The notes under the pieces were generated by a model. The model saw only the letters and a program-made list of their open reading frames with translations. It searched no databases and was not told the DNA's origin. This document shows, one piece after another, positions 28,401 through 64,000 of a DNA stretch of 64,000 nt. Location: IMG/VR virus record IMGVR_UViG_3300035698_035366, positions 1 through 64,000 of that record; one strand, given 5' to 3'. The position numbers and the translations under genes were made by a program. Positions within the stretch are counted from its first letter, which is position 1. Each line of letters begins with the position of its first letter.

Positions 28401-31400
28401 TAACAAAAAATGTTCTCAACTGGAAGGTATCTGTTCCTCCCTCAAACACTGTACTAAACGCAACACGGTTTCCGCCATGACTAAAGGTTGAAATCTTTAG
28501 GATAACCCCTTCTACCGGAATGGTTGGTGTTCCACCAGTATCTTCAAATACAATTTCATTTGTGGTCCAGTCAACTACATAATCATCTCCTTGGTCAAGC
28601 TTTACACCATCAGCATAAACAAAAATCCCTGCATTACTCTGTGGTATTTGTAGCAGACCATATCTCTTTTGTGTTCCATTAGAACGGAGTCTATCTACAA
28701 GGATAATAGGAGAACCAGGTACTCCATCATAAAACACTTTGATATCAACTGATGAATCAACATTAACCTTTACAAGTTCTTCTGGGTGGTCAGAAGCGAA
28801 GTATGGTCTGTGGAAACCCGTACCGTCTGTAACAATGTTATGTTGGTTAGGACTCAACTCACTAAAGTCATTTGAATCAGGATTCATAATAACATCGATA
28901 TCAATTTCAGTATTCATTATTGGTGCAATAGCTGAAGTATTAAACGGTTGGATAACACCACCAAGATTACCATTTACTAGTTTTAACCAACCATTGTCAC
29001 CGTCACCGTCAATAATACCATTCCAATAAATGACATCATCTTCTACGAAGGTTCCAATAGGTATATCAAGTGGTTCTTCACCATTAAAATCATTCACCGC
29101 ACTTGTTAAAGTAACAGCAAAACCATCACCTGGAGTTAAATCTTCATAAGTCAATCCAAGATTTAATAGATTATCACCAAACTTGATAGAAGCGTTCATA
29201 ACCTCAGATCGTAAATTAATATTAGCTGCGGCAATAATTTGTTGGGGTAAAGCGGTTTGTGTAATCTTCTCAAGCCATTTTGGATCTGATACACCATAAA
29301 CTAATGTTCCACGGAAATCACAACCTGGAATTGGATTAACTCTAAATTCTGGACGGATAATTTCATTATAAACCAAATCAGTTCCAAAGAATCCTTCACC
29401 TTTGATTCGTTTTTTGGTTTCAAGTGGTGTTAATAATTGTTGTGGTTCAGAATCAATAGCATTGTAGAATAATGCGACACGGTCAGCAGCATCAAGACCT
29501 TCTGCGCTTGTGAACTTAAAAGTATCAACTGTAACAATGTATTCAAATTCCACATCAACTACACCATGAACAGCACCTTTTGATCCAAACGATACATTAA
29601 TATTTGTATCAAAATTGGTTAGTTTGTTAATATCAAAATCAGCAGTACCAGTGAAGTCAAGCGTTTTAACATTAAGGATATCTCCAGGATTTTGATCAGT
29701 ACCAATGAATACAAATGCACCAGTTAAATTACCATCATTATCAGTAAATCTTTCATCAATAGTAATATCCAAGTCAAGACCAGTTGCAGGTGCGTTATTG
29801 AACAAAATATCCAAGCCGTCAGTTGTAACTGCAAAACGGTGATCTGGATTAGTTGATAACTGGGAACCATTTTTGAAAATTGTAATACCATTCAATACAA
29901 CCGTTAAGGTTTCTAATTGAACAATTTGCTTAGGCATCGCAAACCTTCTAGTTGAAAAATCACCCACATAAGATGAAGTAACTGGTTCATTAATTGTTAA
30001 ACGAACAACCCTAGAAATGATTCTTGAATTTAATACTGACACCATATTGTGTTTAACAGTTAGTTGATTAAGATCAAAGCTACCAATAGTAGGAATCTGT
30101 AAAGCTGAGCTTAGTAAAGTAATTTTTGAAACTTGTGTTCCACTCTGTGGGATATTTGTCGTACATTTGACACGGTCAAAAACAATCTTTGAATTAAGCC
30201 TACGAACACGTTGATATGATCCATCCTCTTCTAGATCAGCATACCATTCATTCCATGGAGAATTTTCTTGAATTACTTCAAAGTCTTCTGCAATATTTTC
30301 ATCTAGAACACGGAAATTGGTTCCATCAAAATAAACTGGTTTATCAAAATCTGTAGCGTGTAACAGTGCTTCATCAATATTTGAATCATATGGTATAACT
30401 AAGTCTTGGCGGAAATCGCGTATCTTTGTATGATAAGGTTTAGCTTCTTCAATATATTCAATTATGGATTGCGTGATATCTTCACGTAGGATTGGTGTCT
30501 GTTTTAATTCTTCTTCTAGTCCACGAATAATAATGTATGAAGTCTTGAATGCCCAATCAACCATGTTCTGTTCTGAATGAACAAAATTAATCATAACAAA
30601 CACAAGATGATTCTGTTCCTGTGGAGTAAGAATATCATTACGGAGGTTATTAGTGAAGATTTGGTATTCTGGTGCTAAGAAAGTATCATTAAGCTGGAAA
30701 GTTACATCTTCAGCAAACACTGTGGTCGTAGTCTTCAATCCATCATCTGCAACAATTAACCAGGTTTCTTTCCCATTTGTATCTGTTGTGATCTCAACAA
30801 TGGTGTTCAATGGTACACTGTCAATCGCAAGTGCATTATCAAACGCTATCCGGTCTGCATAAACAACTGTTGGTGTAAACGTGTCAGATACATTATTCAG
30901 TTCAGTACCACGGTAATCTGCGTAATCCCATACATCTTCTAATCGAACTTCCTGTGTTTCAATTAAGGTGAAAGTATTTACGGCTGTATATTCCCAACGG
31001 GTCCATCTGTTATTATTTTCTGTTGTAGCTTCAACTAGAACTATTTCACCAATTGCAATTGTTGCAATTAACGCATCGCGCTCAGCATTATCCACAACCT
31101 GATAATCAAATCCAGTTGTTGGTAAAGGAGTAACATAGAATAAATTATCATCTGCGGTAATTCTGTTTAATAAGATTGGTTCAGCAGTAAGTAATCTATT
31201 CACTTCATCAACAAAAACGGTTCGGGCTTTCGTTAAATTTCTAAACCACGTTTGTCGAGGACGGATGAATGTTCCATAGCGTTCTGTTTCAGTTAATAAT
31301 GGATCAGGAACTAAATTGTCACTACTAATACCATCAAAGCCAACAATTGAGTCTCGCATCTTTATCCAAATATCATTTGGAATTAACGAAGATGGATCAT

Positions 31401-34400
31401 CTTCACGCAATAACTGCCATTCTTGGTGGATATTAATATCAGGATCTGAAATTTCCCAATTAACCTGAACAACACTATCAATATCTTCTAGAAGTGGTCC
31501 TGAATTAGAATAAATCAATGCGTTGGTTGCAATAGGAGAGAACCATAAAATACCAGCACTTGTCGGGTTTTCAAGTATCTGCCTAACCTGGATAGCGTTA
31601 ATTGAACGGAAATCATAAGCTGGTGTTTGATCAGTATCTTCAACCCAGAAGAAGAATACAGTCTTAAAGTCACCAATTGCTTGATCGAATTCCTGTTTTT
31701 CTACCCAAGATGGATTATCGGGATCTTTAACAGTTCCAGAATAAGTTCCTTCAGAATCTATTTTGGGTTGATCAATAACTGTTTGATAAGAAAGGGGCTC
31801 AACTGGAGATTTAGTCCATTCGTAGATTTTGATCTCTGCACCTGGTGCTAGTTTACCCCAATTTTGTCTACGGTATTCTCGGCTTCCCTGTTCATAATCA
31901 AGGTATAATGATTTACTCGTGTCCCACCACAGTCTAGCAACGGCGGCATCACCCCATGCCAATTTTTCATTAATTGTGTCCAGTTCCGGATCACCGTCAG
32001 TATAGATGGCTGGATCATAATCAATGTGGTAATAAATTTCCTCATCTGCTACTCCAGGAACTAATCCCTTACGTGGATCATTAACATTAAATCTATTCTT
32101 CACTCTATTCGTATGTGCGTTATACAATACGGAGTTGGTTATACGACGGTTTGCTACACGGAGTTCTTGTTCTCGTTCAATGGTATCAGCATCAATATCA
32201 ACAACCACCCAATGCGGTTCGTCGTCAGCACCATTTGAAATATCATCAATCCATGCTTTTGTTAAACCAATTGGAGCATTAACCGCTGGATCAACATCAA
32301 AAACTGTTTTACTTGGAAAACGAACAGGGATAAGCTGGAGAAGAGTTGGAACAATAACGTCAGTATCAATTGGTAGTGCTGTATAATCAAACGGGGCTGA
32401 AGCAATTGTAGAAACAGTAAATTCGGTTGGGTCATTGATTGAAACTACCTCAATTATTCCTTGTAAACTATTTCCTGTTTCGTTGCTTGTATCATTGTCA
32501 ATTATAAACAAAGACCCAGCAACCATAAATTCTAAGTCATTATCAACTTTAATAATCGCCTGGTCACCATCAGTAACCGTTTCAATTTGGCTACTAGTAT
32601 CAATTACTTGGTAAACTTGGAACTCATCAGCGAAGTCCTGATAAACCCAAATATGATCACCCGGCTCAATAGGATTACCATTATCTATAGCATTGAAATA
32701 CGTATCATTCAATACCGAACGGTCAAATGCAGTATAGTCAATATCAGCCAAGTTTACATAACCAGCTGAACGGTAATCACCCTTTTGATCTAAGTAGCTC
32801 GTACGCAATTCCCAAACATTATTAAAGTCAGCTGGTTTACGTTGCCATCTTGGACTCGAATCATCAATCTGTAATACATCATCGAATGGGAAATCATCTG
32901 TGTCGAAACCAGTTCCAAATTCAATTAACTGAGGATTGGTTTTGTGATCTTCCTTAAACATTTGGAATTCGATGCTTGGACGGATTTCTGTTCCGCCGAA
33001 ACGACCGATTCTAACTGCAAACTCTTCAAACACTGTAAATATTTGATTGTTTTGGCCAGTAGCCGCCTTTAAGAATTTATCCAAGCTTAGTCGAGTTCCC
33101 TTGGCTTGAATCATTCCTTGATAGAATTGGAAACTAGTATCAGGATCAATTAGAAGTTGACGAAAATAATCCCTAACTTGGTATCCAGTAATATGACGGG
33201 CGTGTTCACGTAGTGTTACGCGATCAACCGAGTCTTCGATATCAAAATAGTGCTCAAAATCAGTAACGGTTTTATCAAAGTTTTCATAAATGTTATCTGC
33301 TTGCACAATGAAACCAGCAGCATCTAACCGACCAGTCCAATTGTCAGTGATAACTGTGTTGAGCTTTAGACGCTGTTGTCTAACATTAAATACTGGATCA
33401 TAAATCAAATCATTGAATGCTGTTGTGTTGCTTAGAAGCAAAATATGCTCAAACTCTTTAACAAAGGTTCGGCATAAGAAAATACCAATTCCAGCATTAG
33501 GAGTAACCGTCATGGTGTCTTCAGAACGGACAACGGTTGTGTCTTGTGGTTCAATCCGCTGACCAGTTTTATTCAATAATGGGTAAGAACCGTTTACTAA
33601 GGTTTCAATATTTTGCGTAACGCCTTGCGGTGTTCTAAACTTTACAATATCTGATAATGGAGATAGCGCAATAAAGTTACCTTCTGCCCACTTAGTGAGT
33701 GTCCAGAACAAGAATTCCTTACCACTCTGTCTCCAATTATTGATTGTATTTGTGTCTTCATTGAATTTATCAAATATCCACCCCTCAGTTTTTAGATACC
33801 TTTCATAATTAATTAGGAATTGGTAAACATCCTGCTTTGACGTAAATTGTGTACCATAAGGAATTAATTCTGGTTGAGCATCTAAAATACCATCAGTGTA
33901 CTCAGTAACAACTACAGCATTATTTGCAACAGGTGAACCAATAAACCTCCAATTTCCTCTTTCAAAGTTTTCTGTTGATTGGTGAGCAATTGTGCATTCA
34001 AAGATGCTTGCTTGATACTGTATAATTATACCAACAGCATAAGAAGTATTTGTTTCCCAACGAGGACGTGGTTCCGGATCAGGTTCACCAACTCTAATTG
34101 AAACTTTGCGACCATTTGGATCATGTGGTAAAGTTTTGAACAATGGATTTAGTGAGTCGTAACCAAACACTTGCCATCCCTTGCCGTTCCAAGTAATAAT
34201 CACTCCGGAATAAACAAACTCCTGCAAAGAAGCTGATGAGTACAATTCAATTGGTGTGTCTTCTTGTGGTACGAGACCGAAGTTATCGGCAACAACAGTA
34301 ATATTTTCAGTCTCGGTGTAACCACCCATTTTATGACCAAGCTGGACATCAATTCCACGTAAAATATCACCAAAGTTTGTAGTAATATCTTGACCTTGGC

Positions 34401-37400
34401 TAACGACGCGATCACTAATCCACTGTTGTATACCACTACCAATATAACGTACATTGTTTACAACTTCTCCATGAACATTCAATTCACTATTTTGTGGACG
34501 GTTTTTGGTAATAGTGTTAACCCATTGTTCACGAGTAGTTCCAACAAATATTTCATCATATCGAGCTGGATCCCATGCAAATTCAATAAATCGGGCTGGT
34601 TTAATTAGATAACCAACCTGCGCAACAGCAAACGGATATGATTCAGAATTTCTCCAAACCGACTCGATTGGGCCGCCATCACCAAATTCCCAAGGACGTG
34701 AAGCATTGTCAATTGTTGGGGTTGATAAAACAATCCCTGCAGAAACTGGATTAAGAAGAGTTCCTGATGCGTCAACTGGTAAAATATTAGAAAGTCCTGG
34801 ACGGGCATAAATTGGATCAATTCCTTTACGTATTCCGTCTTTAATTTCACCATTTTCAATGTCAGTCCATAATGAACTGTTACCAGAAGTGTATGGTGAT
34901 GGACCATATTCTGCATCCCAATAAGAAGGTTTCTTGTCAAAACCAAGCATTTCCCAAGGATATAGATCGGGACGTTCAGTACCATAAACAAAACGATACA
35001 TTCCTCTCCAATAGCCTGGAACGGGTTTACCATTAAAGGTTTGGAGTCCTTTGTAATTATAAGTGAACGGTTCACCAGCAGTGGCTATAACGTTTTCTCT
35101 ATAATCAGCGTTATTTAAAATAGCCCATCGCTCAAACATAGGGCGGAATAATGTACTTACTTCATCTGGTGTATAATCAGTTTCTCTGAAGTAATTAGGA
35201 ACGAATTCGTCAATGTTAAAATCTCTAACATTTTCGCTGGTATACTTTGTATCAACCGAGGCATAAACCATATTTTCATATTGAAGTTGTGCCTGGTCTC
35301 GTGGATCAACGAGATCTAATGGATTGTTGGTTGGTAGAGTTGTTGATTCAGAAATAAGATAATACAATGACCCATCATGTCCACGTAGAACAGGTTGTGG
35401 GTTTGGTAATGTAGTATCCAAGAAAACTTCTGGTTCATAAACTGGAAAAACACCAAGAAATGATGGAGTAGCGGGGATTAAACTTCCTTCACTAATCATT
35501 CCCGAGTAATAGAATGGAAAGGTGTTTGTTTTTCCAACATTGATTTGGATGATCGCTTCATTGACCATTTGTGTAGGAGACAATGACGTGAGTTGTCCAG
35601 TCCTAAGCATCTGATCAACTTTACTAACAAATTTGTTTCTAAACCGTGTATATTCTCTTTCAACAAACCTCACAGCCTTCATATAATCTAAATTATCATC
35701 TGACGCTAAGAGCATTAATTTCAACATTGGTGCTTGGTGTTGCATAATTGAACGACCAAATGATAAATCTTGCGTAGTATCACGCCAATTGTTTAATCCA
35801 TAAGCCGTTCCTTGGAAATCTTCTTGGTTCTCGATAATTTCTCTAAAGTGGTTAAAGAATTCTGTCTGGGATACTTCTTGAATATCTTCATTATTTGGAT
35901 TAGCTACCAAATTCAATGGTATTTCATAATTTGCAACATCTTCATTTGTTGGTCGGAAATCCGGATTATGAGATCTAACTCTAACAACTGGTTCAAGTGT
36001 ACCTACGGAAGGAGTAATGCTTAGGATATTTCCAGAGATTGAAAATTCTGATTCATCTAATTGTCGACCAGCAGCCTGAACAATTAAATTTGGAACATCA
36101 CCTGGAACGTTGGCTGCTGGCTCCTGTGTAAGAGGAAACTCAGAGGTTGGAAACTTGGAAGCTTCAAACACGTCAATGATGTATTGCTTTGTTTTGTTGT
36201 TGATAAGGTTCCAGCTATTGGAATACAAATCGTCTTCTACTGTATCACCAATTTGACGGAAGAAGTAGTAACCAATTGTTTCACCAAAATCTGAGGAGAA
36301 TCGTTCAGTTGCTAGAGTGTTTTCAAAAACAATTTCACCAGTGTTGTTGAACGATAGTTTTAGACCGACGTTTGGATCAACTGGTTGGAAAGGACTTTGA
36401 TTTTCTTTATAGGTGAAAATGGTTGATCCTTGGAAATCTGAGCCAGGATAAACACCAACATCATTCAATTTCACATTATCAATATCGTAAAGCTGGAATT
36501 TTGGTGGATCATTCTTCCCCAATTTCCTAATTCCTGGGTTCCAATTTGTTCCATCAAATTCAACAACCGTTCCGCCGAATGTATTACCATATCGTATTCT
36601 GTAAACATCGTCTGATACTGCAAGATCTTTAACAAGAGTGAGTTCAATAATACCAGTTGTTTTAATACCAGATACTTCGTATATTCGATTGTTAACAGCA
36701 GGGTTGATATCACTTGTTACGAGAATCTTTAAACCATCACTAATAGCTATACCATTAAACTCATTTGTTCCGTCAACTGTTATTGCCTGTGTAACACCAT
36801 CAACTATATGACCAGCAATTCCATATTGACCATATGCTTTACCAATAATATTATTTGGATTGTCAAGTTGTGAACCTGGAAACCAAATAGTTTTTCCATT
36901 AAGCGCACCGAAGAAGTTAATCGATTCAGTATAAACAACATCAGCGGTATATGAAGGTACTCCGTAGTTGAATACTTCCAAGTCTCTTATAAATTCGATA
37001 ATTGGGCGTTTTGCTTGTAAAGAACTTGGGTCTTCTTCAATAACGGTGTTGGATATTTCAATAACATCTCTGTGATACCAATGATTACCAGTACTCCAAG
37101 GAGATCCTTCAATACTTCCACGCTCGATAAGAAAATATTCAGGTCCTGGTTCTTGATCGTTGTCAGAGGCTAGAATATCCCATAATGATGCGTCCCAACC
37201 ATCTTCGTCCCAACCGGAGAAGCTTCCTTCATCTGTTACTTCTAGAAGACGTATTCCTCTACCAACACCCTCAACACCATAAGTCTTACCATTGGTCAAG
37301 GCATTTGCATCATCGGTAATTGTTATTCTCAATCCAGAAGTAAGATCAATGGTGTTACCGTCAACGGTTACCGTCGCAGTAACTTGTCCAATAATATAAT

Positions 37401-37923
37401 TTTGAATATCTGTTGGTGAATCAACGACAATTGGGTTGGGTCCTTGGTCTAGCCAGAAATAATTACTAAATGATGCAAATTTATCTAGATCAATTGGTGG
37501 AGCCCATGAATAATATTCTTGCTCAAATAATCTATTATGATCATTAACAATACCGCCTTGAAAACGGAGGTGATTAAGGATATCTTCGTAAAACAGCGAG
37601 TTAGTCAAATTGTTATCAATATCACGCGATGTAAGGATTGGCGCTAATTGGTAATATTCACGTGGTTTTGTTTCTTCGGATAGATAAAACTCTCGAGTTG
37701 GTTCCCAGAAGAAAGTCTTTTCCCCTATAAAACCAGAAACTTTTCGGCTACGGTTAGGTTCAAATAGGTGATCAATTGTTGCACCAAAGAATTTCTTTAG
37801 TGCATCTGTTTGATTAATTACTGGTAGGAGACCAATCTGCTCACGTTTTGGTTGAACCGAACGCTCGTCGACTTGCTCTGGAACCGGGTTTCTTGGATCT
37901 TTGTTAATTTTCCGTACTGCCAT
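25498..37923 (-). CDS. Giant virion structural protein (probable baseplate wedge/fibre scaffold), 4141 aa
   Basis: 12.4-kb uninterrupted ORF directly downstream of the gp6-like gene; acidic, beta-rich, WDxxxWD motifs and internal repeats. Confidence 0.85.
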   Translation of the reverse strand: MAVRKINKDPRNPVPEQVDERSVQPKREQIGLLPVINQTDALKKFFGATIDHLFEPNRSRKVSGFIGEKTFFWEPTREFYLSEETKPREYYQLAPILTSRDIDNNLTNSLFYEDILNHLRFQGGIVNDHNRLFEQEYYSWAPPIDLDKFASFSNYFWLDQGPNPIVVDSPTDIQNYIIGQVTATVTVDGNTIDLTSGLRITITDDANALTNGKTYGVEGVGRGIRLLEVTDEGSFSGWDEDGWDASLWDILASDNDQEPGPEYFLIERGSIEGSPWSTGNHWYHRDVIEISNTVIEEDPSSLQAKRPIIEFIRDLEVFNYGVPSYTADVVYTESINFFGALNGKTIWFPGSQLDNPNNIIGKAYGQYGIAGHIVDGVTQAITVDGTNEFNGIAISDGLKILVTSDINPAVNNRIYEVSGIKTTGIIELTLVKDLAVSDDVYRIRYGNTFGGTVVEFDGTNWNPGIRKLGKNDPPKFQLYDIDNVKLNDVGVYPGSDFQGSTIFTYKENQSPFQPVDPNVGLKLSFNNTGEIVFENTLATERFSSDFGETIGYYFFRQIGDTVEDDLYSNSWNLINNKTKQYIIDVFEASKFPTSEFPLTQEPAANVPGDVPNLIVQAAGRQLDESEFSISGNILSITPSVGTLEPVVRVRSHNPDFRPTNEDVANYEIPLNLVANPNNEDIQEVSQTEFFNHFREIIENQEDFQGTAYGLNNWRDTTQDLSFGRSIMQHQAPMLKLMLLASDDNLDYMKAVRFVEREYTRFRNKFVSKVDQMLRTGQLTSLSPTQMVNEAIIQINVGKTNTFPFYYSGMISEGSLIPATPSFLGVFPVYEPEVFLDTTLPNPQPVLRGHDGSLYYLISESTTLPTNNPLDLVDPRDQAQLQYENMVYASVDTKYTSENVRDFNIDEFVPNYFRETDYTPDEVSTLFRPMFERWAILNNADYRENVIATAGEPFTYNYKGLQTFNGKPVPGYWRGMYRFVYGTERPDLYPWEMLGFDKKPSYWDAEYGPSPYTSGNSSLWTDIENGEIKDGIRKGIDPIYARPGLSNILPVDASGTLLNPVSAGIVLSTPTIDNASRPWEFGDGGPIESVWRNSESYPFAVAQVGYLIKPARFIEFAWDPARYDEIFVGTTREQWVNTITKNRPQNSELNVHGEVVNNVRYIGSGIQQWISDRVVSQGQDITTNFGDILRGIDVQLGHKMGGYTETENITVVADNFGLVPQEDTPIELYSSASLQEFVYSGVIITWNGKGWQVFGYDSLNPLFKTLPHDPNGRKVSIRVGEPDPEPRPRWETNTSYAVGIIIQYQASIFECTIAHQSTENFERGNWRFIGSPVANNAVVVTEYTDGILDAQPELIPYGTQFTSKQDVYQFLINYERYLKTEGWIFDKFNEDTNTINNWRQSGKEFLFWTLTKWAEGNFIALSPLSDIVKFRTPQGVTQNIETLVNGSYPLLNKTGQRIEPQDTTVVRSEDTMTVTPNAGIGIFLCRTFVKEFEHILLLSNTTAFNDLIYDPVFNVRQQRLKLNTVITDNWTGRLDAAGFIVQADNIYENFDKTVTDFEHYFDIEDSVDRVTLREHARHITGYQVRDYFRQLLIDPDTSFQFYQGMIQAKGTRLSLDKFLKAATGQNNQIFTVFEEFAVRIGRFGGTEIRPSIEFQMFKEDHKTNPQLIEFGTGFDTDDFPFDDVLQIDDSSPRWQRKPADFNNVWELRTSYLDQKGDYRSAGYVNLADIDYTAFDRSVLNDTYFNAIDNGNPIEPGDHIWVYQDFADEFQVYQVIDTSSQIETVTDGDQAIIKVDNDLEFMVAGSLFIIDNDTSNETGNSLQGIIEVVSINDPTEFTVSTIASAPFDYTALPIDTDVIVPTLLQLIPVRFPSKTVFDVDPAVNAPIGLTKAWIDDISNGADDEPHWVVVDIDADTIEREQELRVANRRITNSVLYNAHTNRVKNRFNVNDPRKGLVPGVADEEIYYHIDYDPAIYTDGDPELDTINEKLAWGDAAVARLWWDTSKSLYLDYEQGSREYRRQNWGKLAPGAEIKIYEWTKSPVEPLSYQTVIDQPKIDSEGTYSGTVKDPDNPSWVEKQEFDQAIGDFKTVFFFWVEDTDQTPAYDFRSINAIQVRQILENPTSAGILWFSPIATNALIYSNSGPLLEDIDSVVQVNWEISDPDINIHQEWQLLREDDPSSLIPNDIWIKMRDSIVGFDGISSDNLVPDPLLTETERYGTFIRPRQTWFRNLTKARTVFVDEVNRLLTAEPILLNRITADDNLFYVTPLPTTGFDYQVVDNAERDALIATIAIGEIVLVEATTENNNRWTRWEYTAVNTFTLIETQEVRLEDVWDYADYRGTELNNVSDTFTPTVVYADRIAFDNALAIDSVPLNTIVEITTDTNGKETWLIVADDGLKTTTTVFAEDVTFQLNDTFLAPEYQIFTNNLRNDILTPQEQNHLVFVMINFVHSEQNMVDWAFKTSYIIIRGLEEELKQTPILREDITQSIIEYIEEAKPYHTKIRDFRQDLVIPYDSNIDEALLHATDFDKPVYFDGTNFRVLDENIAEDFEVIQENSPWNEWYADLEEDGSYQRVRRLNSKIVFDRVKCTTNIPQSGTQVSKITLLSSALQIPTIGSFDLNQLTVKHNMVSVLNSRIISRVVRLTINEPVTSSYVGDFSTRRFAMPKQIVQLETLTVVLNGITIFKNGSQLSTNPDHRFAVTTDGLDILFNNAPATGLDLDITIDERFTDNDGNLTGAFVFIGTDQNPGDILNVKTLDFTGTADFDINKLTNFDTNINVSFGSKGAVHGVVDVEFEYIVTVDTFKFTSAEGLDAADRVALFYNAIDSEPQQLLTPLETKKRIKGEGFFGTDLVYNEIIRPEFRVNPIPGCDFRGTLVYGVSDPKWLEKITQTALPQQIIAAANINLRSEVMNASIKFGDNLLNLGLTYEDLTPGDGFAVTLTSAVNDFNGEEPLDIPIGTFVEDDVIYWNGIIDGDGDNGWLKLVNGNLGGVIQPFNTSAIAPIMNTEIDIDVIMNPDSNDFSELSPNQHNIVTDGTGFHRPYFASDHPEELVKVNVDSSVDIKVFYDGVPGSPIILVDRLRSNGTQKRYGLLQIPQSNAGIFVYADGVKLDQGDDYVVDWTTNEIVFEDTGGTPTIPVEGVILKISTFSHGGNRVAFSTVFEGGTDTFQLRTFFVKSSTLVFVDGEPLDPVDYVVFGDELSITTGPVPTDTRVFVVVYDTGVSETIEDNDPFTDTYVLDNPTGITEGQILVTVDSVPEPFTYTSLTGEVTLLTGIPTPGSSVRITVFNQISPSLVRTIVFAGDGTTPDTVVNGDSSLTVTLPIEQENSMPSHANMLVREDGLRLRPDRTFYQTLIPDQYLLVLDTEVDTTNGEVISLIRDGVEQTENVDYVNPSTRRGTLDTSVSMVQALSDIGLTVGDLNPGDYFTVTNLANTVITNDFQGGWGNEFSILPPDIESHVDVYDPTDLFTQSELLVEDCDDGLDGEFSYDPTTDIDSGRVYGLTTYLNRRDGIESGFSVATPTNAFNIVPVSFEEGQGILYIGNNTFSVLAADKFYRPETMDASITIADNLTNLGLTYDDLLIGDTFKVTTTVIDNFFGSLPLGSFIDGDVLYWNGPADGIDADGWRKTQNPLVPEREIHFVNPSAEENDIVFWLNDVDREYDADSTTVTILNPNPASEYQVTFFSIDDSLNIETHVYDESRDGIYQINNLPFDDSYIWFSVNGERKLYQRDYLITSAGTGWDTTPWDAGGDDDRREPVSNEGIIISDIIEVIEQYDFGIVSVVDDSEEDMEDGGGLFDEAQFDEFGNPSPTICDITYKEIQEVTKDNRGKLIPFPGSDGWDTVTSSSIIRTNPFVGTTADWLAKSKDDIVATIISGPPIQTPFAYRVFTGALGSKQFSRIADFFKLFVREEFTSTDVILKADVNPTFLESEFPIDYVYEPTASAPGVLYIGTERLEYSNVNGPLFDNTTGKRFYEFSGLNRATRLISPSPSYGIGTVIERAGPLEQISHVYEEVSPDPLISLGAEAILAESSSIDKIADGNTFVYALDIYPVERTITSVYLVDQSGSTEVLTPLINETDNKIYTINNITNVDNIILGSQIEFDVAPVADALRIIQVIPESLNLLNKQTRQINFLRKEAGTLD

Positions 37924-40900
37924 TAAATGCCAATCCTAAGTGTTGATTTATTAAAGTTTTCTACTATATCTACATCAGTAACTCTTGCTGATGAAATGAA
38001 TAATTGGTTTGTTTCTAATCTAATTTCTTCAAGTTGTCCGAAGCGGCTTTCGTCATTTAACGGTACAATTTCTACGCCACCCACAACTGTTGCATTTTGC
38101 AAATGTATAAATGCTTGAAGTTCCGAGGCATAAAAAGTATCACCAACATCCCATCTAGTAACGTCAAAAAATTCATTAATTGAGTTAATTACTCGTGTTT
38201 TCAGTTCACCGTCGGATACATCGGTTCCTTGCACCTTAATTATTTTGAATTTAGCTCTAACTTCAGCCTCTGCTCTATCCCCGAACAAGGTAACATATTC
38301 CACTGGACGCCAAACAAGAGTATCGGATACCATTTTGTTCGTATCAAAGAAGTTAAAGTCTCTTCTCAACTCTTCACTTGTTGGTGGAAGCGGTGCTGGA
38401 TTAGACGGGCCAACTGGTTTCGTTCCAGCAATAAAGCGGCGATATTCTATATCGTATCCTTCGGTTAATGCATAAAGATCAATGATGTTTGTAATGGCTG
38501 GGTCAATACGTCGGTCTCTATCAGCAATGTGCTTCCAAATAAAGCGCATACCAGACCTACCCGTACGGGCTTTGAAAACCCTTAATGTTAATGTATAATT
38601 ACCAAGAATAGTTTTATCCAGGTCGTCTGTTGATGCGTTTGTATATTCATAAAATGCGCCATCAGTAGCGTTATAAACAATCGTTCCCTGTACTATCTTT
38701 GATCTATCTTCTGCATTAGGTAGTGGGTCTGTTGCATTAATCCCAGGGACTGATACAATTGTAAAAATTGGTATTTCCGTCTCTGTTTGATCCAAATTAG
38801 TTACTACTTCATGAAAAACAAACGGTGAAGTGGTCACACCTTCTTCCACCGCCTTGACAAAAATTGATGGATCATCTGGAATACCGTCTTCATCCAAATC
38901 AGTGTATGAAACAATAACACGACGTGGTTCCTGGAAACCATCTGGATAAAGGAACACATCAGTAACTGCCATTTTGATATCTTCACCTAGACCTATAGCA
39001 GGATTATTTGGTTGTGCCACTGTAGATGGAATAGTAATTGTATCACTTGATACACGGCCAGCTAATAATCCCTGGACTTTTCTGAACTGGTTAACGAAGA
39101 AACGAACATCACGAACGCTTTCCCAGATGAAACGTAATCCCCGTGCTCGTACTTTCCATACATCACCACTAAAGTCCATACGTAACAACCATGACGCATC
39201 GAGGTTTTGTAGATCAACATTGCCTGCGTTGTCTAAGCTGAATGGTGTAGAGACGGGTGAGATGTTTGCGGCTGTGATGATTACCCAATTTTGGTTAACT
39301 GCATCAAAGCGCAAACCGAAAGTTTCTTCATTATCAATCTCTGCGCGTACAGCGTTAATTTCCGAGAGAATGAGTGTATTGCGGAATGATGGGAAGACTG
39401 TTATAACTTTGGATCCAGTGATGACTGGTTCTGCAAGCGTTACTCGACCTTTACCACTGGCAAAAATACCATCACCACCGTCGGAACCATTATTGGTTAC
39501 GCTTTGTACTGCTACCCAGTTCTTTGCTGCGGTGTTGGGGTCTTCAAACTCAATAATTGCGCCTTCATCGATATAATTACGGGTTTGGTCAACAGTGTCG
39601 ATTGGCCCGATTTGTATAGCTGATGTATTACCAGAAACATTGAAGAAACCAGTTGAGCTGAATGCCAAATCTGATGCTTGAGTCCATTCCAAGTCTTCGT
39701 CATTTCCTTTAATAATTCGGGGATTGGTTGGATCTGGATCGAGCGTCCCTAGCGTGGCGTCAACGTATGGAAAAATCTCATAATAAAATTGCTGCAATTC
39801 TCTATCGAGTAGTGCTGGATTAACAGTTTCAGTTATAATTTCTGCAGAAGTTTTGTTCGATGACAGTGGAATTTCAGTGTAGAAATCGTTTGGCTCTTGA
39901 TAAAACATACCATCATCAGCAATAACTTTTACACTTTGTGAAGTTGAAGTGGGATCATTTAGATCGATGAAACGACTGTGGCCACTATATGTTCTGTTTA
40001 ATGCTTTTAGCTTTAAAATGCGTGTATCTTGTAGAGGGAAGACATTATAATCTTCACCATTAACCATTCTGTTCTGTGTATAAAATACTTGTGGAGCACG
40101 TTCACGGATTTGGTCGATTGATTCACTGATGGCAGAATTTGAAACTGTTTCTTGAAGATTCATTACCAACGTTAAGGAATGTGAATCACCGCGAGCATTA
40201 AAATATGGTATAGATATTTGGACACCGCGCATATTGGATGGTTTGATATCAAAAAGTTGATTAGCAGATACCCTATAATATGAACGTAAGGTACCAGTTG
40301 GAACATTACCAAACACACCATCACCGAAACGTAAACTTATTTGATCATTGTCACGTGTAATTACTGAGAAAATATCATTGATATTATTAACCAATGAATT
40401 GAAAATAACATTGTTACCAACAATAGCCGGAACCGGTGTCCAATTAGTAAAAGGTGTCCCATCACCATTAATTGATTGTACAAACACATCAAAATTATTG
40501 ATATTAGGTGTATTGATATTAATAACTCTATTTTCAATTGGAACTGATAGATTGAAATCTCTAAAATTCAATGTTCCTTGCTTAAAGTACATAAAGAACC
40601 CTGTATTAGCTGAAGAGTTCCCATTGCCATCATTACGATAAATGATATGTGATGTATAATCAGGAGTTGGATTTCTTTCTGTGAAACCAGTTGTTTCATT
40701 GAAATCAACGTTTACTATTTCAAAGTTGAACGAGCCCTGGTTTGTATTAGCACTAAAGGGATATTGGCCAACATCAACTGGGTCGGTATCAATCGCATAC
40801 AAATCAGTTGGTATATTGTTTACAATTCCGTTTTTAACTGGTTGACCAAATGGATTTGTTGTTTGGAACGCAGAGTTCATAATTAAACTCCATTGTTCGA

Positions 40901-41357
40901 AGAAATCTGGATTATTAGCATCATTCCAAACAATATTTGCGTTTTGGAGGTTCTGCCCAAGAGAATCAACAATTCTTTCTGAAGTTCGGATCGCAACAAC
41001 TTTCAATAAGCCACTAGAGCCAATATTACGTGTTGGTTGATATGAAAGAAGTCTTCCCATCCGTAGAAGTGATTCCTTTCTTTCAGCGGTATCAATAAAG
41101 TTTTCCCGTGTATTCAAATCCATACGGAAAGCCAGGGATTGCCCCAGATAAGCCATTAAATCTACAAGTGCCACAAATTCAGATGATTCAATCCAATCGT
41201 TAAAGTCTTCAGGAAAGTTGAATCGGATATAATCAATCATCGACTGGCGGATGGTATCGAAATCATATGCATTAAAATTAATATCAGAAAATGCTCGATA
41301 TATAACTGTCCAGTCTTCTGCAGAAAAAAGCTCACTTTGTCGGCGAATTTGTGCCAT
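37923..41357 (-). CDS. Baseplate wedge subunit, T4 gp6-like, 1144 aa
   Basis: DFDTIRQSMIDYIR.NFPEDFNDWIESSE, RENFIDTAERKESL, ESIDQIRERAP..FYTQNRMVNGEDY motifs. Confidence 0.85.
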   Translation of the reverse strand: MAQIRRQSELFSAEDWTVIYRAFSDINFNAYDFDTIRQSMIDYIRFNFPEDFNDWIESSEFVALVDLMAYLGQSLAFRMDLNTRENFIDTAERKESLLRMGRLLSYQPTRNIGSSGLLKVVAIRTSERIVDSLGQNLQNANIVWNDANNPDFFEQWSLIMNSAFQTTNPFGQPVKNGIVNNIPTDLYAIDTDPVDVGQYPFSANTNQGSFNFEIVNVDFNETTGFTERNPTPDYTSHIIYRNDGNGNSSANTGFFMYFKQGTLNFRDFNLSVPIENRVININTPNINNFDVFVQSINGDGTPFTNWTPVPAIVGNNVIFNSLVNNINDIFSVITRDNDQISLRFGDGVFGNVPTGTLRSYYRVSANQLFDIKPSNMRGVQISIPYFNARGDSHSLTLVMNLQETVSNSAISESIDQIRERAPQVFYTQNRMVNGEDYNVFPLQDTRILKLKALNRTYSGHSRFIDLNDPTSTSQSVKVIADDGMFYQEPNDFYTEIPLSSNKTSAEIITETVNPALLDRELQQFYYEIFPYVDATLGTLDPDPTNPRIIKGNDEDLEWTQASDLAFSSTGFFNVSGNTSAIQIGPIDTVDQTRNYIDEGAIIEFEDPNTAAKNWVAVQSVTNNGSDGGDGIFASGKGRVTLAEPVITGSKVITVFPSFRNTLILSEINAVRAEIDNEETFGLRFDAVNQNWVIITAANISPVSTPFSLDNAGNVDLQNLDASWLLRMDFSGDVWKVRARGLRFIWESVRDVRFFVNQFRKVQGLLAGRVSSDTITIPSTVAQPNNPAIGLGEDIKMAVTDVFLYPDGFQEPRRVIVSYTDLDEDGIPDDPSIFVKAVEEGVTTSPFVFHEVVTNLDQTETEIPIFTIVSVPGINATDPLPNAEDRSKIVQGTIVYNATDGAFYEYTNASTDDLDKTILGNYTLTLRVFKARTGRSGMRFIWKHIADRDRRIDPAITNIIDLYALTEGYDIEYRRFIAGTKPVGPSNPAPLPPTSEELRRDFNFFDTNKMVSDTLVWRPVEYVTLFGDRAEAEVRAKFKIIKVQGTDVSDGELKTRVINSINEFFDVTRWDVGDTFYASELQAFIHLQNATVVGGVEIVPLNDESRFGQLEEIRLETNQLFISSARVTDVDIVENFNKSTLRIGI

Positions 41358-57429: not shown

Positions 57430-58317
57430 ATGGCGCAAGCTAATTGGCAAAAGTCAATGAGTAATACTATGATTACTGAACGGACCGGAGACCGTCAACG
57501 GTTCCAACCACAAACAATTGACATAACGTTAGAAGAACGAGATTATACAAGGCTTCGACAGTATATCCAAGCCGAGACAGGTTTTTATAACGCTATTAAT
57601 AACATATTCGCTCCCAAATTGCGAGGGTTCCCGCATGAATTGGTTGAGCTTGACGAAAGATTTGAAAAATTGTTTATCGATCTTTCTTATACTGGTTTCA
57701 ATTTGCGAGATGTCATTTACAGAAACAAAGAAACTGCTGAACTACCAGATGAACTAGAAAAACATAGAGATTTTATTTACGGAAAAAATAGTACCGGAAA
57801 TAGATTAGTTACTGAATCATTTGTTATTATGACTGAAGAATTTGGAAAAGGTCATTTTGTTCATCCGTTGGTTAAAAAAAGAATGGCAACGGAAATGTTT
57901 AGGTTTTACGTTAAACAAGCTAAAAATATTATGCAAACTGTTCGAAACCGAGAAGGTGAACTCGAACTCCGTGACACTGGTGAACTACTTGAACCAATGG
58001 ATACCATTAGAAAACGACATCTACAAATACCTAGAGAAATCGTAGATATTAAATGGGACAAAGATAAAGAAGAAACAATAATCACCAACCCATTTTGTTC
58101 ACCTATTAAATTTAGACATAATAATATACTAGCTGATAAGGGATGGAATCTTATGATTCTGCACCAAGAGCCTGGAAAAATGGCTTTAGGATTTACTCCA
58201 TGGGTGATAGATATTCGACATTCAAAGGCATTATACTTACTCAAATATGTTGATGTACGTTCTCCTAACGGAGGAGGAGCATTTTTTACTGCAAAATCCG
58301 GTGCAGGAAAGCATTAA
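57430..58317 (+). CDS. Hypothetical protein, 295 aa; tentative TnpB/Cas12f WED-REC-like protein without RuvC
   Basis: AAGGAG RBS before ATG 57430, so the CDS itself is secure. The TnpB resemblance is by-eye only (see findings); confidence refers to that call. Confidence 0.4.
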   Translation: MAQANWQKSMSNTMITERTGDRQRFQPQTIDITLEERDYTRLRQYIQAETGFYNAINNIFAPKLRGFPHELVELDERFEKLFIDLSYTGFNLRDVIYRNKETAELPDELEKHRDFIYGKNSTGNRLVTESFVIMTEEFGKGHFVHPLVKKRMATEMFRFYVKQAKNIMQTVRNREGELELRDTGELLEPMDTIRKRHLQIPREIVDIKWDKDKEETIITNPFCSPIKFRHNNILADKGWNLMILHQEPGKMALGFTPWVIDIRHSKALYLLKYVDVRSPNGGGAFFTAKSGAGKH

Positions 58318-58362: not shown

Positions 58363-58430
58363 TAGGCATATCATTTAGGCACACTAATCAACTACCGATC
58401 AACTACTAATCATAGGCACATTTTAGGCAC
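58363..58430 (+). repeat. Cluster of short direct repeats: 4 x TAGGCA and 2 x ATCAACTAC
   Basis: TAGGCA at 58363, 58376, 58413, 58424; ATCAACTAC at 58387 and 58398. Confidence 0.75.
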
Positions 58431-58451: not shown

Positions 58452-58483
58452 AAAAAAGCGACCCGAAAGTCGCTTTCTATTTT
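58452..58483. terminator. Bidirectional intrinsic terminator
   Basis: AAAGCGAC-CCGAAA-GTCGCTTT stem with a U-rich tract on both strands (TTTCTATTTT plus; TTTTTT minus). Confidence 0.7.
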
Positions 58484-58539
58484 GATTGTGTGTAATTTTT
58501 ACACCAATCAAAAAACCACAACGTTATATGACACTTCGC

Positions 58540-59070
58540 AGCGTCACAAGTATTTAGCATACTTGTTATTTGCAGACTCGGAAATAAGAGACCTGAGAAG
58601 TGACTACGTCGCTAGAGCATAGTGACTGATCCCCCTCATTGCGGTTGTGGGCAGTGATAGGGCCAGGAAAGTCATCGAAACCCTGGGAAGGATAGAAGAT
58701 AGGAACGCTGCCTGTCGCTATTGTTCGAGAATCTAAGCCTGTGCTAAGGTCAACTGCTGACTATGTGCCGCTTAGTACAAATCCAGAGTCCAGACTAAAA
58801 ATCTGGAACGTTTCCCTCTATTGGTCGCTGATATGAGCTGATAGAATGGCCGAAGCTGTAGGTTAAATCAAACCTCAGACCGTCGTGTTGGATAGAGTAA
58901 AATTCGGGAGGCTGCATCGTAGTTCGAAAGAAGTAAGGTTGTAATGGCACACCTGGTGACCGTAAGATGCACATGTCAGAAGAATATTCTATTTTTTATC
59001 TATTTTTTTCTCCACCTTTTGGGGGCGGGGGAGGAAGAGTCTGAAAAGAATTAGGATAAGAAAAGAATTA
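58540..59070 (+). ncRNA. Candidate large structured non-coding RNA, family not recognised
   Basis: No ORF in the track; GC-richer than flanks; at least 7 helices found by eye, several with G-U pairs that favour the plus strand; GAAA-capped stem; purine-rich linkers. Confidence 0.5.
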
Positions 59071-59310
59071 AAACACTTCGTGTTTACCAATGGGGATGAT
59101 TAAAGGAAGCAAGCCGTGCTTGCTTCTAATTTAGCAGTAATATCATTCGCGTAGCTCATGCAATTACTGCTAAATTGGTTTACTTATTAATTAATTCGTT
59201 TAATTATATGATAATTTGTAACTATATAAAATGATTATAGTATTCTTTAATGAAACGTTAGTGCAATGCTAAGAATACTATAATCCGTTTGAAGCGAAGC
59301 TTCTAACGTA
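59071..59310. other. Cluster of perfect inverted repeats / DNA hairpins (possible origin or ssDNA signal)
   Basis: Stems of 6, 9, 14, 15 and 5 bp; GCGAAGC at 59294, GCGTAGC at 59149, C-GAA-G triloop on the minus strand at 59071-59085. Confidence 0.6.
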
Positions 59311-59372: not shown

Positions 59373-59567
59373 TTATATTAACGGCATACTAGAATTTTTA
59401 GTATTTTCAATATTTTCTTCAATTATGTGGTGTATGATCTTTCTTTCCTTATAACTTAATCTCCAACCATCCTCTCTAGATATGGAGCCACGCATGTACC
59501 AACAGATATGATAGATCGTATCCATCAACTGCATTTCTTCATTCTCCATTTGCTTTAATAAGTCCAA
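59373..59567 (-). CDS. Tail/baseplate assembly chaperone C-terminal ORF (gp51-like or GT-type frameshift extension)
   Basis: ICWYMRGSISREDGWRLSYKERKII motif; TTG start only; frame is open back to the slippery site at 59609-59603. Confidence 0.7.
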   Translation of the reverse strand: MDLLKQMENEEMQLMDTIYHICWYMRGSISREDGWRLSYKERKIIHHIIEENIENTKNSSMPLI

Positions 59568-59599
59568 GATCTCCTGAGGAGATAGATAACGGAGTCTTG

Positions 59600-60574
59600 T
59601 TATAAAAAATTTGCAGGATTAAACTCTAATGGTATATCCCATTTATGTCCACATTTTCTACATACAACTTCATGCTCTGTTGGTACAGTTTTAATTCCTG
59701 TAACACTATCAACTTTATCCTGTATTACCTTTTGATCCCTAGCTGGTAATGATACCATAAACTCATTGATAAAATCTCGATTTGTTATTTCTTGACCATC
59801 TGGCATAATAATGTGAGTAATTGATTTAGCAGCCAAATTAAGTTTAACATCATTAAGTCTGTCAATTGTATCACCGAACGCTTTAATTGAACTGATATCT
59901 TCACCCTTATCTTCTAACAATTTGAAATGTTCGATTTTCTTTGATTCTTGGAATGCGATTTGTTGAGCAATAAAGATATTTTCTAGATCATATTGTTTAA
60001 CAAATACGTTTAAGTCTTTCATTTGTACAGAATATGGTGGATCCAATGGTTCAATTCCTGACATTAAATTGCGTATATCAATTTGGTATGAATTTTCTGC
60101 TTCACAGTCTGGACATTTTGTTTGAATTTCGTAATCATCTCCGTAAGTAACTGCACGAATCGCCATCATAATTATATCAATATCAGCTTGAACTAAACTT
60201 CGTGTATGAATAATACAAGGAACGCAACTCTTAATTGCATTTTCTGTTGCTCGTCCACTCATAATAGCATCAGGGTTCTTAAATAATAATTCATCCGCGG
60301 CAGTCATTGGAAAAATTTCAACTTCACCTGAAATCGTTAAATCGATATCACTATCGGCATACCATACAAGTTGACTTGGTAATTTAATAGTCATTCCTGG
60401 CGCTCTAAAATAGCTACTTAAAGGATTACCTGGCTTTGTTGGTGTTGCTTTTGTTTCTGGGGCTCTTGTGGATGGATTATTAATGTTTTGAGTCTTGGGT
60501 TCTTCCCAATCGTCATCTAATTGTTTTATATTACCCATATGTGGCATTTGTGTTGGATCAAATTCGTTGCTCAT
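59600..60574 (-). CDS. Baseplate hub / tail assembly chaperone (gp26-like), 324 aa
   Basis: NPLSSYFRAP, IKLPS, PMTAADELLFKNPDA, DIDIIMMAIRAVTYG, CPDC and CRKC Zn-binding pairs, EFNPANF end. Confidence 0.8.
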   Translation of the reverse strand: MSNEFDPTQMPHMGNIKQLDDDWEEPKTQNINNPSTRAPETKATPTKPGNPLSSYFRAPGMTIKLPSQLVWYADSDIDLTISGEVEIFPMTAADELLFKNPDAIMSGRATENAIKSCVPCIIHTRSLVQADIDIIMMAIRAVTYGDDYEIQTKCPDCEAENSYQIDIRNLMSGIEPLDPPYSVQMKDLNVFVKQYDLENIFIAQQIAFQESKKIEHFKLLEDKGEDISSIKAFGDTIDRLNDVKLNLAAKSITHIIMPDGQEITNRDFINEFMVSLPARDQKVIQDKVDSVTGIKTVPTEHEVVCRKCGHKWDIPLEFNPANFL

Positions 60575-63042: not shown

Positions 63043-64000
63043 ATGAGCTGGAAAAAACATTTGGCTGCCGTACCACAAGGGCAAAAACTCCAAGCTGCAA
63101 TTGATAGAATGCACGCTAATATGGATAATGAAGCCATTACTGGTACGAGTGGTAAATTTACTTCTTATCTACCAGAAGTTTATTCTGGGCAAGATAACCG
63201 TATTGAAAGATACGGTCAATATTTGAACATGGATAAAGATCCAGCCGTCAATGCTGCATTGGATACCATTTCATATTTCTGTACACAAACTGAAGAAGAA
63301 TCACCTTTGATGTTCAAAATTGATTACTTTGATAATGTCACTGATGCGGAAACAGAAGTGTTACAAGCTTCCCTTAGAAAATGGACATTAATCAATAAAT
63401 TCAAACAACGACTATTTGGTATTTTCAGAAAAACTATTATGTATGGTGATCAATTCTTTATTCGCGACCCAGAAACATTTGAACTGCATTGGGTCAATCA
63501 CGAAAATGTTGATAAGATAATTGTAGATGAGGCACAAGGAAAGAAACTTGATCAATTCATAGTTAGGGATTTGGATTTGAATCTGCAGACATTAGTAGCA
63601 ACTCAGCCTAGAAAAGGACGTGGTTCACAAGGACCAACAGGGTGGGCTGGAACGCCTAAGGCCGCTGGACCAGTCACTGTTCCATCATCAGCAGGTGGTT
63701 ATGGTACAAGGTTTGATACTGGTCAAGGTGAATATATTGATGCAAATCATGTTGTTCAATTCTCTCTTTCAGATGGACAAGACGCAAATTGGCCGTTTGG
63801 TTCTTCAATTTTGGAATCAGTTTTCAAACCATACAAGCAGAAAGAATTAATTGAAGATGCGGTTATCATTTATCGAGTTCAAAGAGCACCTGAACGTAGA
63901 GTATTTTATATTGATACTGGTAATGCACCCCCACATAAGGCTATGGAGTTCGTTAATCGAATTTCAAATGAAATACACCAACGACGTATACCAACACAGA
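63043..64000 (+). CDS. Portal vertex protein, T4 gp20-like, partial (runs off the window)
   Basis: Manual translation from ATG 63043: MSWKKHL...RIERYGQYLNMDKDPAVNAALD...YGDQFF...SILESVFKPYKQKELIEDAVIIYRVQRAPERRVFYIDTGN; no stop before 64000. Confidence 0.92.
   Translation, partial: MSWKKHLAAVPQGQKLQAAIDRMHANMDNEAITGTSGKFTSYLPEVYSGQDNRIERYGQYLNMDKDPAVNAALDTISYFCTQTEEESPLMFKIDYFDNVTDAETEVLQASLRKWTLINKFKQRLFGIFRKTIMYGDQFFIRDPETFELHWVNHENVDKIIVDEAQGKKLDQFIVRDLDLNLQTLVATQPRKGRGSQGPTGWAGTPKAAGPVTVPSSAGGYGTRFDTGQGEYIDANHVVQFSLSDGQDANWPFGSSILESVFKPYKQKELIEDAVIIYRVQRAPERRVFYIDTGNAPPHKAMEFVNRISNEIHQRRIPTQ

Follow-up and report, generated by a model that had tools for sequence, protein, structure and literature searches.

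The window, by which we mean the whole 64,000-nucleotide stretch of DNA analysed here, covers the opening 64 kb of a viral record of 296 kb (GC 38%) that derives from a salt-lake metagenome assembly. Among its genes are those for a T4-type portal, a baseplate hub and Rad50/Mre11-like recombination proteins, and the closest cultured relatives are Atu_ph07, Phosso and PA5oct, with which the hub protein shares only about 31% identity. A 1.28-kb gap without ORFs (bounds 58318-59372/59599) separates the gene of a 295-aa protein, P0004, from the end of a convergent operon. GC content is 45-50% across 58500-58900, compared to about 30% in the flanks, and each of the six frames contains 8-19 stops, both in the window and in the homologous loci L009, L010 and L015. 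Judged by comparison with these homologues, the conserved element in the gap is a structured non-coding RNA gene on the plus strand, extending from 58536 to about 59100-59135 (roughly 560-600 nt); its transcription and both ends of the RNA are predictions. An earlier note, made from the letters of the window, had proposed a large multi-helix non-coding RNA on this strand, a proposal that is borne out by the homologues, the shared helices, the fold z-scores of the plus strand and the stops in all frames. The features of the locus are listed in Table 1.

Table 1. Features of the RNA locus and its flanks (window coordinates)
Feature	Position	Strand	Basis or remark
Gene of the 295-aa protein P0004, candidate RNA partner	57430-58317	+	Predicted WED+REC lobe of TnpB/Cas12f/Fanzor
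Four TAGGCA boxes, after the stop codon of the upstream gene and before its terminator	58363-58429	+	Motif count
Intrinsic-terminator-like hairpin and T run, ending the transcript of the upstream gene	58455-58484	+	Terminator scan
Candidate -10 element TTATAT, at the start of the conserved block	58524-58529	+	Alignment and L015 sequence
RNA body	58536-59100	+	Homology to L009 (91.4% identity), L010 and L015; 17 helices common to all four
5' hairpin Ha	58546-58566	+	Block AGTATTTAGCAT conserved in sequence; pairing partner varies among homologues
Insertion, window and L009 only	58567-58606	+	Gap in L010; holds the CAGACTC of the earlier note
Hairpin Hb, 7 bp	58608-58626	+	4 pairs changed on both sides
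Hairpin Hc, CCC-TC-ATTGC with GCAGT-GA-GGG	58633-58662	+	Shared helix, covariation block
Hairpin Hd, CCAGG/CCTGG, conserved loop AAAGT...AAAC	58663-58686	+	Shared helix
Three-tier hairpin He	58687-58726	+	Inner stem GATAGG 58698-58703 with CCTGTC 58711-58716; loop has conserved GGAACG
Three-tier hairpin Hf	58733-58775	+	Covariation block
Single-stranded conserved CCAGAG, then hairpin Hg (58789-58794 with 58802-58807)	58784-58807	+	Alignment, covariation block
Hairpin Hh, in place of the CTCTATT/GATAGAG of the earlier note	58817-58845	+	Shared helix
Hairpin Hi	58856-58878	+	Shared helix
EGFOA-like conserved core	58869-58973	+	Sub-threshold Rfam EGFOA matches, pair counts
Closing stem TCAGA/TCTGA round a pyrimidine-rich/G-rich hairpin (59003-59016 with 59024-59037)	58976-59044	+	Fold, shared helix
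A-rich unstructured linker	59045-59072	+	Fastest-diverging part, window versus L009
Small hairpin Hm, ACAC-TTC-GTGT	59073-59083	+	Compensatory in L009 and L010
10-bp GC-rich hairpin, weak T tail; possible RNA 3' end or terminator	59105-59127	+	Read off the sequence
Convergent operon end: 64-aa ORF (59373-59567) and baseplate hub (59600-60574)	59373-60574	-	Hub is PF12322

Flanks and neighbours of the RNA

The RNA starts about 200 nt past the P0004 stop codon, beyond the terminator-like hairpin, an equivalent of which was found in the homologues. The candidate -10 element reads TAATAT in L010 and TAATCT in L015, and we place a putative transcription start near 58536; no consensus sigma-70 promoter was scored at 58524-58529 by the promoter scan. 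At the other end, the RNA may extend to the hairpin at 59105-59127, which the terminator scan did not call. Between the RNA and the hub operon are two long perfect inverted repeats (59131-59174 and 59233-59285, with stems of 10 and 14 bp) that are about 74% conserved in L002. They are probably the terminators of the converging transcripts.

The TAGGCA boxes consist of a hexamer that is under-represented in the genome (19 forward-strand copies compared to about 67 expected), and 4 of the 19 copies fall within 58363-58429. Similar boxes, of TAGGCA or GGCTCA, stand before the RNA slot in L009, L010, L015, L016 and L034. Three further TAGGCA copies (G000:C1:134588-134675) lie directly upstream of a gene at 134699, which, judging by eye, we take to be gp32-like. 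The boxes may be a phage promoter or a regulator-binding motif.

Elsewhere in the record, 34 tRNA genes are found at 244-279 kb, at least 185 kb away from the RNA. The T4-type portal gene (63043-63999, continuing into L005 at 1-1532) is about 1000 codons long and has a match to an intein-splicing domain within its portal domain. Giant ORFs are present on the minus strand: 4141 codons at 25498-37923, 1144 codons at 37923-41357 and at least 1326 codons at 1-3978.

Homologues and shared helices

The homologues L009, L010 and L015 were recovered solely by way of the flanking proteins. L009 belongs to another phage (run SRR27977663), and its upstream protein is 78% identical to that of the window. 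The corresponding proteins of L010 and L015 are 40% and 41% identical, respectively; the latter locus came from an exhaustive profile search with the upstream protein, which gave 162 homologues. The RNA of the window is 91.4% identical to that of L009, while the flanking genes are only 75-77% identical, and the 120 nt from 58906 to 59025 contain no substitution between the two. Comparison of these loci shows that the RNA is kept across a small clade of T4-like jumbo phages sampled in saline and marine settings. The reads of four DNA runs yielded identical low-coverage fragments and, in marine sediment, one 238-nt relative of 58840-59057, in all not enough material for covariation analysis.

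Direct searches for the RNA gave little. A DNA search of 50,697 phage records yielded no match to the RNA, single-protein scans of viral contigs with both flanking proteins gave none, and three exact or degenerate core patterns matched nothing in viral contigs. A pattern scan of metagenomes returned the contig of the phage itself and three chance matches (L011, L013 and L014) in GC-rich coding DNA.

Folding energies were compared with those of dinucleotide shuffles, a control named in the earlier note. The plus strand of the window folds better than its shuffles (z = -2.11) and the minus strand does not (z = -0.32); for L010 the corresponding values were -7.38 and -2.94. Column shuffling of a naive three-way alignment with RNAalifold gave z = -3.49 on the plus strand and -2.3 on the minus strand. 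Naive MAFFT plus RNAalifold mispairs divergent hairpins, and on that alignment just 63% of the pairs derived from the window hold in L010. Because of this mispairing, the helices were checked block by block.

Seventeen helices occur in identical order in the window, L009, L010 and L015. In sequence-only MAFFT alignments, 95.3% of cells pair in the Hb-Hc block, compared to 30-40% when the partners are slid, and 96.6% pair in the Hf-Hg block, compared to 17-48%. Six pairs are changed on both sides in Hb-Hc and seven in Hf-Hg, and the covariation score of each block was reached by 0 of 500 shuffles, in a set of four sequences that form two close pairs and fall short of R-scape-grade statistics. 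In the 3' core 98% of cells pair (28-53% when slid), with 3-4 pairs changed on both sides. Many stems, chiefly that at 59003-59037, use G-U pairs, which are A-C on the opposite strand, and the earlier note was right that such pairs are feasible on the plus strand only.

Overall, the RNA consists of hairpins in a row, with short conserved linkers (TGATC, CCAGAG, GACCGTCGTGTT and GGGAGGC) between them. No long-range or pseudoknot pairs were established from the four sequences. Possible tertiary contacts among conserved linkers (GGGAG to CTCCC and GACC to the Hc loop) were considered and dropped as inconsistent across the homologues.

Ten helices had been proposed by eye before any homologue was at hand, of which seven find support in the homologues, one of them in part, and three are wrong. 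CCAGG/CCTGG is held in the homologues with 2-3 compensatory pairs, and CTAAGC/GCTTAG, TCCAGA/TCTGGA and TGCATC/GATGCA are present as well. The TTC-GAAA-GAA hairpin is kept and becomes CTC-GAAA-GAG, and the G-U-rich hairpin drawn at about 58987-59064 is supported, with its core at 59003-59037. The pairing ACAAGTAT/ATACTTGT (58546-53/58559-66) is right insofar as each homologue has a 5' hairpin, which in L015 is in a different register. Three pairings fail. Where AGTGATAGG/CCTGTCGCT (58653-61/58711-19) had been drawn, CCTGTC pairs instead locally with GATAGG 58698-58703 in all homologues. The 3' partner of CTCTATT/GATAGAG (58816-22/58891-97) is absent from L009, L010 and L015, and this helix is replaced by a local hairpin, 58817-58824 with 58838-58845, that shows a C-G to U-A change. 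The 5' partner of the long-range CAGACTC/GAGTCTG (58573-79/59037-43) lies inside the 40-nt insertion confined to the window and L009; TCTGA 59040-59044 pairs with TCAGA 58976-58980 in its stead.

Resemblance of the core to the EGFOA motif

The earlier note had found no match to tRNA, tmRNA, RNase P or group I/II introns, which Rfam and ARAGORN confirmed, and had suggested either a GOLLD- or ROOL-like RNA or a new one. The first half of that suggestion fell away, since neither model matches even at E<=10; as to novelty, the RNA is not quite without relatives, and the core gives a sub-threshold match to EGFOA with the same fold. Like GOLLD and ROOL, the RNA is large, multi-helix and phage-encoded and has GNRA-type loops; it differs in matching neither of their Rfam models at gathering score or at E<=10 and in not lying beside tRNA genes. 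Across the whole window no family reached its gathering score.

The EGFOA RNA motif is Rfam RF02955 (Weinberg et al. 2017), and a cryo-EM preprint describes RNA-only self-assembly of EGFOA RNAs into dimers and trimers (bioRxiv 10.64898/2026.07.01.735769). EGFOA was the sole recurrent Rfam signal, at 20.3 bits in the window, 30.3 bits in L010 (E=0.043, 4227 families) and 26.7 bits in L015, all below the gathering score of 37.7 bits. The three matches lie at the homologous position and cover the full model length (1-108). Other Rfam matches at E<=10, to miRNAs and leader peptides, were generic hairpin matches and were discarded, and RF02956 and RF02954, which had been guessed to be the EGFOA-associated motif, proved to be other families.

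All four stems of the EGFOA consensus structure (a 5' hairpin, and a closing stem round two hairpins) are present in the core. Its 5' part consists of the linker GACCGTCGTGTT, hairpin Hj (58890-58905) and GGGAGGC. Inside the closing stem (58913-58918 with 58966-58971) lie the GAAA hairpin (58923-58932) and a second stem (58937-58940 with 58958-58961) whose 17-nt loop is GTAATGGCACACCTGGT. Compensatory changes are seen in the 5' hairpin, in the GAAA hairpin and in the stem round the 17-nt loop, the last of which goes from GGTT/GACC to GGAC/GTCC. The nucleotides CCGTC, AGG and TAA(A)G that are conserved in EGFOA are present and the TAGT after CCGTC is absent, while the EGFOA loop GTAAAGCTAGACCTGGG is matched at 12 of 17 positions in the window and 10 of 17 in L010.

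The likeness extends to the order of elements (ACCGTC linker, hairpin, AGG, closing stem, small hairpin, 17-nt-loop hairpin, TAAA), to the form of the loop (GTAA.G....CCTGG) and to the location, an unusually long stretch of viral genome free of ORFs. The two RNAs differ in that the core here sits within about 450 more nucleotides of conserved helices outside any Rfam model, and in that CCAGAG lies about 90 nt upstream of ACCGTC, with three hairpins between, compared to 8 nt in EGFOA. Our own core model (R1) does not detect a true EGFOA in L029, nor the RNAs of L016 and L034, and MAFFT could not align true EGFOA with 58869-58973. On balance the core likely has the EGFOA fold and several of the signature nucleotides, as far as the alignments go, and we give homology between the two about even odds.

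A bona fide EGFOA (57 bits) is found at 8723-9094 of L029, a viral contig (IMG/VR UViG_2534681824_000001). It lies in a 900-nt gap and is preceded, at a distance of about 230 nt, by a near-consensus sigma-70 promoter (TTGACA-17-TATAAT, extended by TG). EGFOA in general may thus belong to a longer transcript as one of its domains rather than being a small RNA. No gene for a P0004-like protein is present among its neighbours.

A TnpB-like protein beside the RNA and what the pair may be

The gene directly upstream of the RNA on the same strand, which the earlier note had missed as a TnpB/Cas12-like gene, gave no Pfam or PHROG match. The AF2 model of P0004 (70-sequence alignment) has a pLDDT of 90.6 and a pTM of 0.84. 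In VIA-align, all 50 top solved chains were Cas12 or TnpB at Z 9.2-10.4; a similarity of Z about 10 and TM 0.3-0.4 denotes shared architecture, not function. Residues 24-265 of the model align with TnpB 1-174 and Cas12f 1-208/274, the N-terminal WED+REC lobe, and nothing in the model aligns to the RuvC lobe. Foldseek against PDB, BFVD and AFDB agrees, the AlphaFold clusters and viral models being IS605 OrfB/TnpB transposases, and the best PDB sequence match of the family profile is Fanzor1 (E=0.002). The predicted structure thus shows the fold of the guide-RNA-binding WED+REC lobe without the RuvC nuclease lobe. TnpB, Cas12f and Fanzor hold their guide RNA by means of this lobe, and the RNA is encoded just downstream on the same strand.

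The P0004 family has at least 162 uncultured members by exhaustive profile search, with a uniform length of about 295 aa. A profile scan of viral contigs gave one megaphage homologue locus (L031), and tblastn of three family members found no match among cultured phages. In several relatives, homing-type nuclease genes of the Endonuclease VII, PD-(D/E)XK and GIY-YIG types lie directly upstream of the TnpB-like gene on the opposite strand (L010 803-1294, L015 3473-3922, L016 942-1520 and L019 2866-3687).

The order of gene, then RNA on one strand is kept in the window, L009, L010 and L015, down to a protein identity of about 39%, counting every lineage with downstream DNA at that identity. Where the protein is 30-36% identical (L016/L017 and L034/L035), the slot is filled by another stretch without ORFs, about 1.1 kb long and similar among these loci. 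It shares with the RNA of the window an AGGAACG hairpin, an ACCGT-GTT plus hairpin and a TCAG...CTCCC/GGGGGGA...TCTGA module; in L016 and L034 this module is analogous to 58976-59044. These stretches (L016 3100-3560, L017 2830-3290 and L034 3760-4205; GC-richer in L016 and L017) match neither the core model nor EGFOA, and the L016 gap folds no better than its shuffles (z = -1.4 and -1.05). They are probably a second subfamily of the same RNA.

L003 and PA5oct have neither a P0004-like protein nor the RNA at the locus, and in PA5oct neither an EGFOA-like RNA nor a P0004-like protein was found. The same slot of PA5oct, from the hub to the recombination genes (L028 7526-8870; NC_071039.1 about 75.8-77.2 kb), is about 1.3 kb long, has only hypothetical ORFs of 38-50 codons annotated and matches neither EGFOA nor the core model. 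An unrelated RNA might be concealed there. By itself, adjacency says little for a partnership, because the gene order of the whole block is conserved in the clade.

Our preferred reading, to which we assign a probability of roughly one half, is that the RNA gene with its likely EGFOA-like core encodes the RNA subunit of a ribonucleoprotein whose protein subunit is the nuclease-less protein upstream. The RNA would be an omegaRNA-like partner of the 295-aa WED+REC protein, and the pair would be a domesticated, nuclease-free, RNA-heavy derivative of a TnpB-omegaRNA system in which the large RNA supplies the scaffold formerly given by the missing half of the protein. Such a complex might recognise a nucleic-acid target without cutting it, or serve in infection as a particle with a structural or regulatory role. 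Binding of the RNA by the protein is presumed in this proposal, as is any guide function.

Domesticated TnpB derivatives that lack the nuclease and have guide RNAs have been described in phages (PMC10705468, PMC13418256). The present pair resembles a TnpB-omegaRNA system in the WED+REC architecture of the protein (Z 9-10) and, in part, in the structured RNA directly downstream on the same strand. It differs in several respects. The protein lacks the RuvC/TNB lobe altogether. The RNA is 2-4 times the length of an omegaRNA, with no guide and no target found (the rest of the phage genome gave no guide-like match of at least 16 nt), and it begins past a terminator, whereas omegaRNAs overlap the 3' end of tnpB. 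Neither TnpA nor IS200/605 ends were detected among the neighbours, which are phage recombination and baseplate genes. Nuclease-dead derivatives of these systems include TldRs and exapted dCas12f, and TldRs reportedly keep an inactivated or shortened RuvC/TNB lobe. Here the lobe is absent, the RNA measures about 560 nt and the phage genome yielded no target, in contrast to the short promoter-aimed guide of a TldR. We suggest, tentatively and as something still rather doubtful, that the 295-aa WED+REC protein and the omegaRNA-like RNA of about 560 nt with an EGFOA-fold core represent an undescribed, RNA-dominated TnpB descendant in jumbo phages. If this is true, the orphan EGFOA motif would acquire a protein partner and be placed in the TnpB/Cas12 lineage, and RNA-guided or RNA-scaffolded recognition could outlast the nuclease lobe even when that is lost entirely.

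The chief alternative is a stand-alone, ornate EGFOA-like RNA, for example one that self-assembles into an RNA-only particle as reported for EGFOA, ROOL and GOLLD, with the adjacency to P0004 reflecting inherited gene order; we hold this to be possible, with well under an even chance. EGFOA RNAs are capable of forming trimers and dimers from RNA alone (bioRxiv 10.64898/2026.07.01.735769), the true EGFOA of L029 has no P0004-like neighbour, a terminator stands between the P0004 gene and the RNA, and the synteny of the whole block is conserved. Against it, the fold of the upstream protein is used elsewhere to hold an RNA encoded downstream, and in the few lineages sampled the protein and an RNA-sized gap are either both there or both missing.

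It is improbable that the conserved stretch acts instead as DNA or as an untranslated part of an mRNA (an origin, a promoter/operator array or convergent terminators) and that its helices are incidental. The repeated TAGGCA/GGCTCA boxes upstream and the several inverted repeats at 59105-59285 would fit such a role, but compensatory changes keep the pairing, many G-U pairs are valid on one strand only, the fold z-scores favour the plus strand and the boxes lie outside the helical body. Still harder to sustain is a functionless pseudogene, that is, the decayed RuvC/TNB 3' half of a tnpB gene with a remnant of its omegaRNA. The missing RuvC and TNB would measure about 600 nt, the size of the element, and the upstream gene stops where the WED lobe stops; yet the region is more conserved than the flanking genes, the substitutions in its stems are compensatory, no homologue has an open frame and the short form of the protein is old and stable, because the 162 family members are uniformly about 295 aa. 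That the RNA is a diverged form of one of the classical classes (GOLLD, ROOL, RNase P, tmRNA, group I or II intron) can be dismissed as highly improbable: the resemblances seen by eye, of AGGAAAGTC to RNase P CR-I (with P4) and of CAGACTAAA to the group I R element (with S), concern strings that lie in covarying hairpins or are not conserved in L010 and L015, and Rfam at E<=10 with lax filters gave no match to any of these families, ARAGORN none and the surroundings no exon context.

The structured RNA gene is well supported as real and may be a new and much enlarged relative of the poorly understood EGFOA. Large structured phage RNAs are few, and we know of none with a known function. For the present RNA, the conserved helix map, the probable link to EGFOA and the neighbouring protein with a TnpB/Cas12 fold and no nuclease are handles on function. 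If the RNA acts alone, the EGFOA fold would be extended to a five-fold larger architecture. If the RNA and P0004 form a particle, the pair would be a new branch of the RNA-guided TnpB/Cas12 world in lytic jumbo phages, a natural case of an RNA assuming the scaffold role of a protein domain that was lost, and a compact basis on which to develop nuclease-free, RNA-directed binders.
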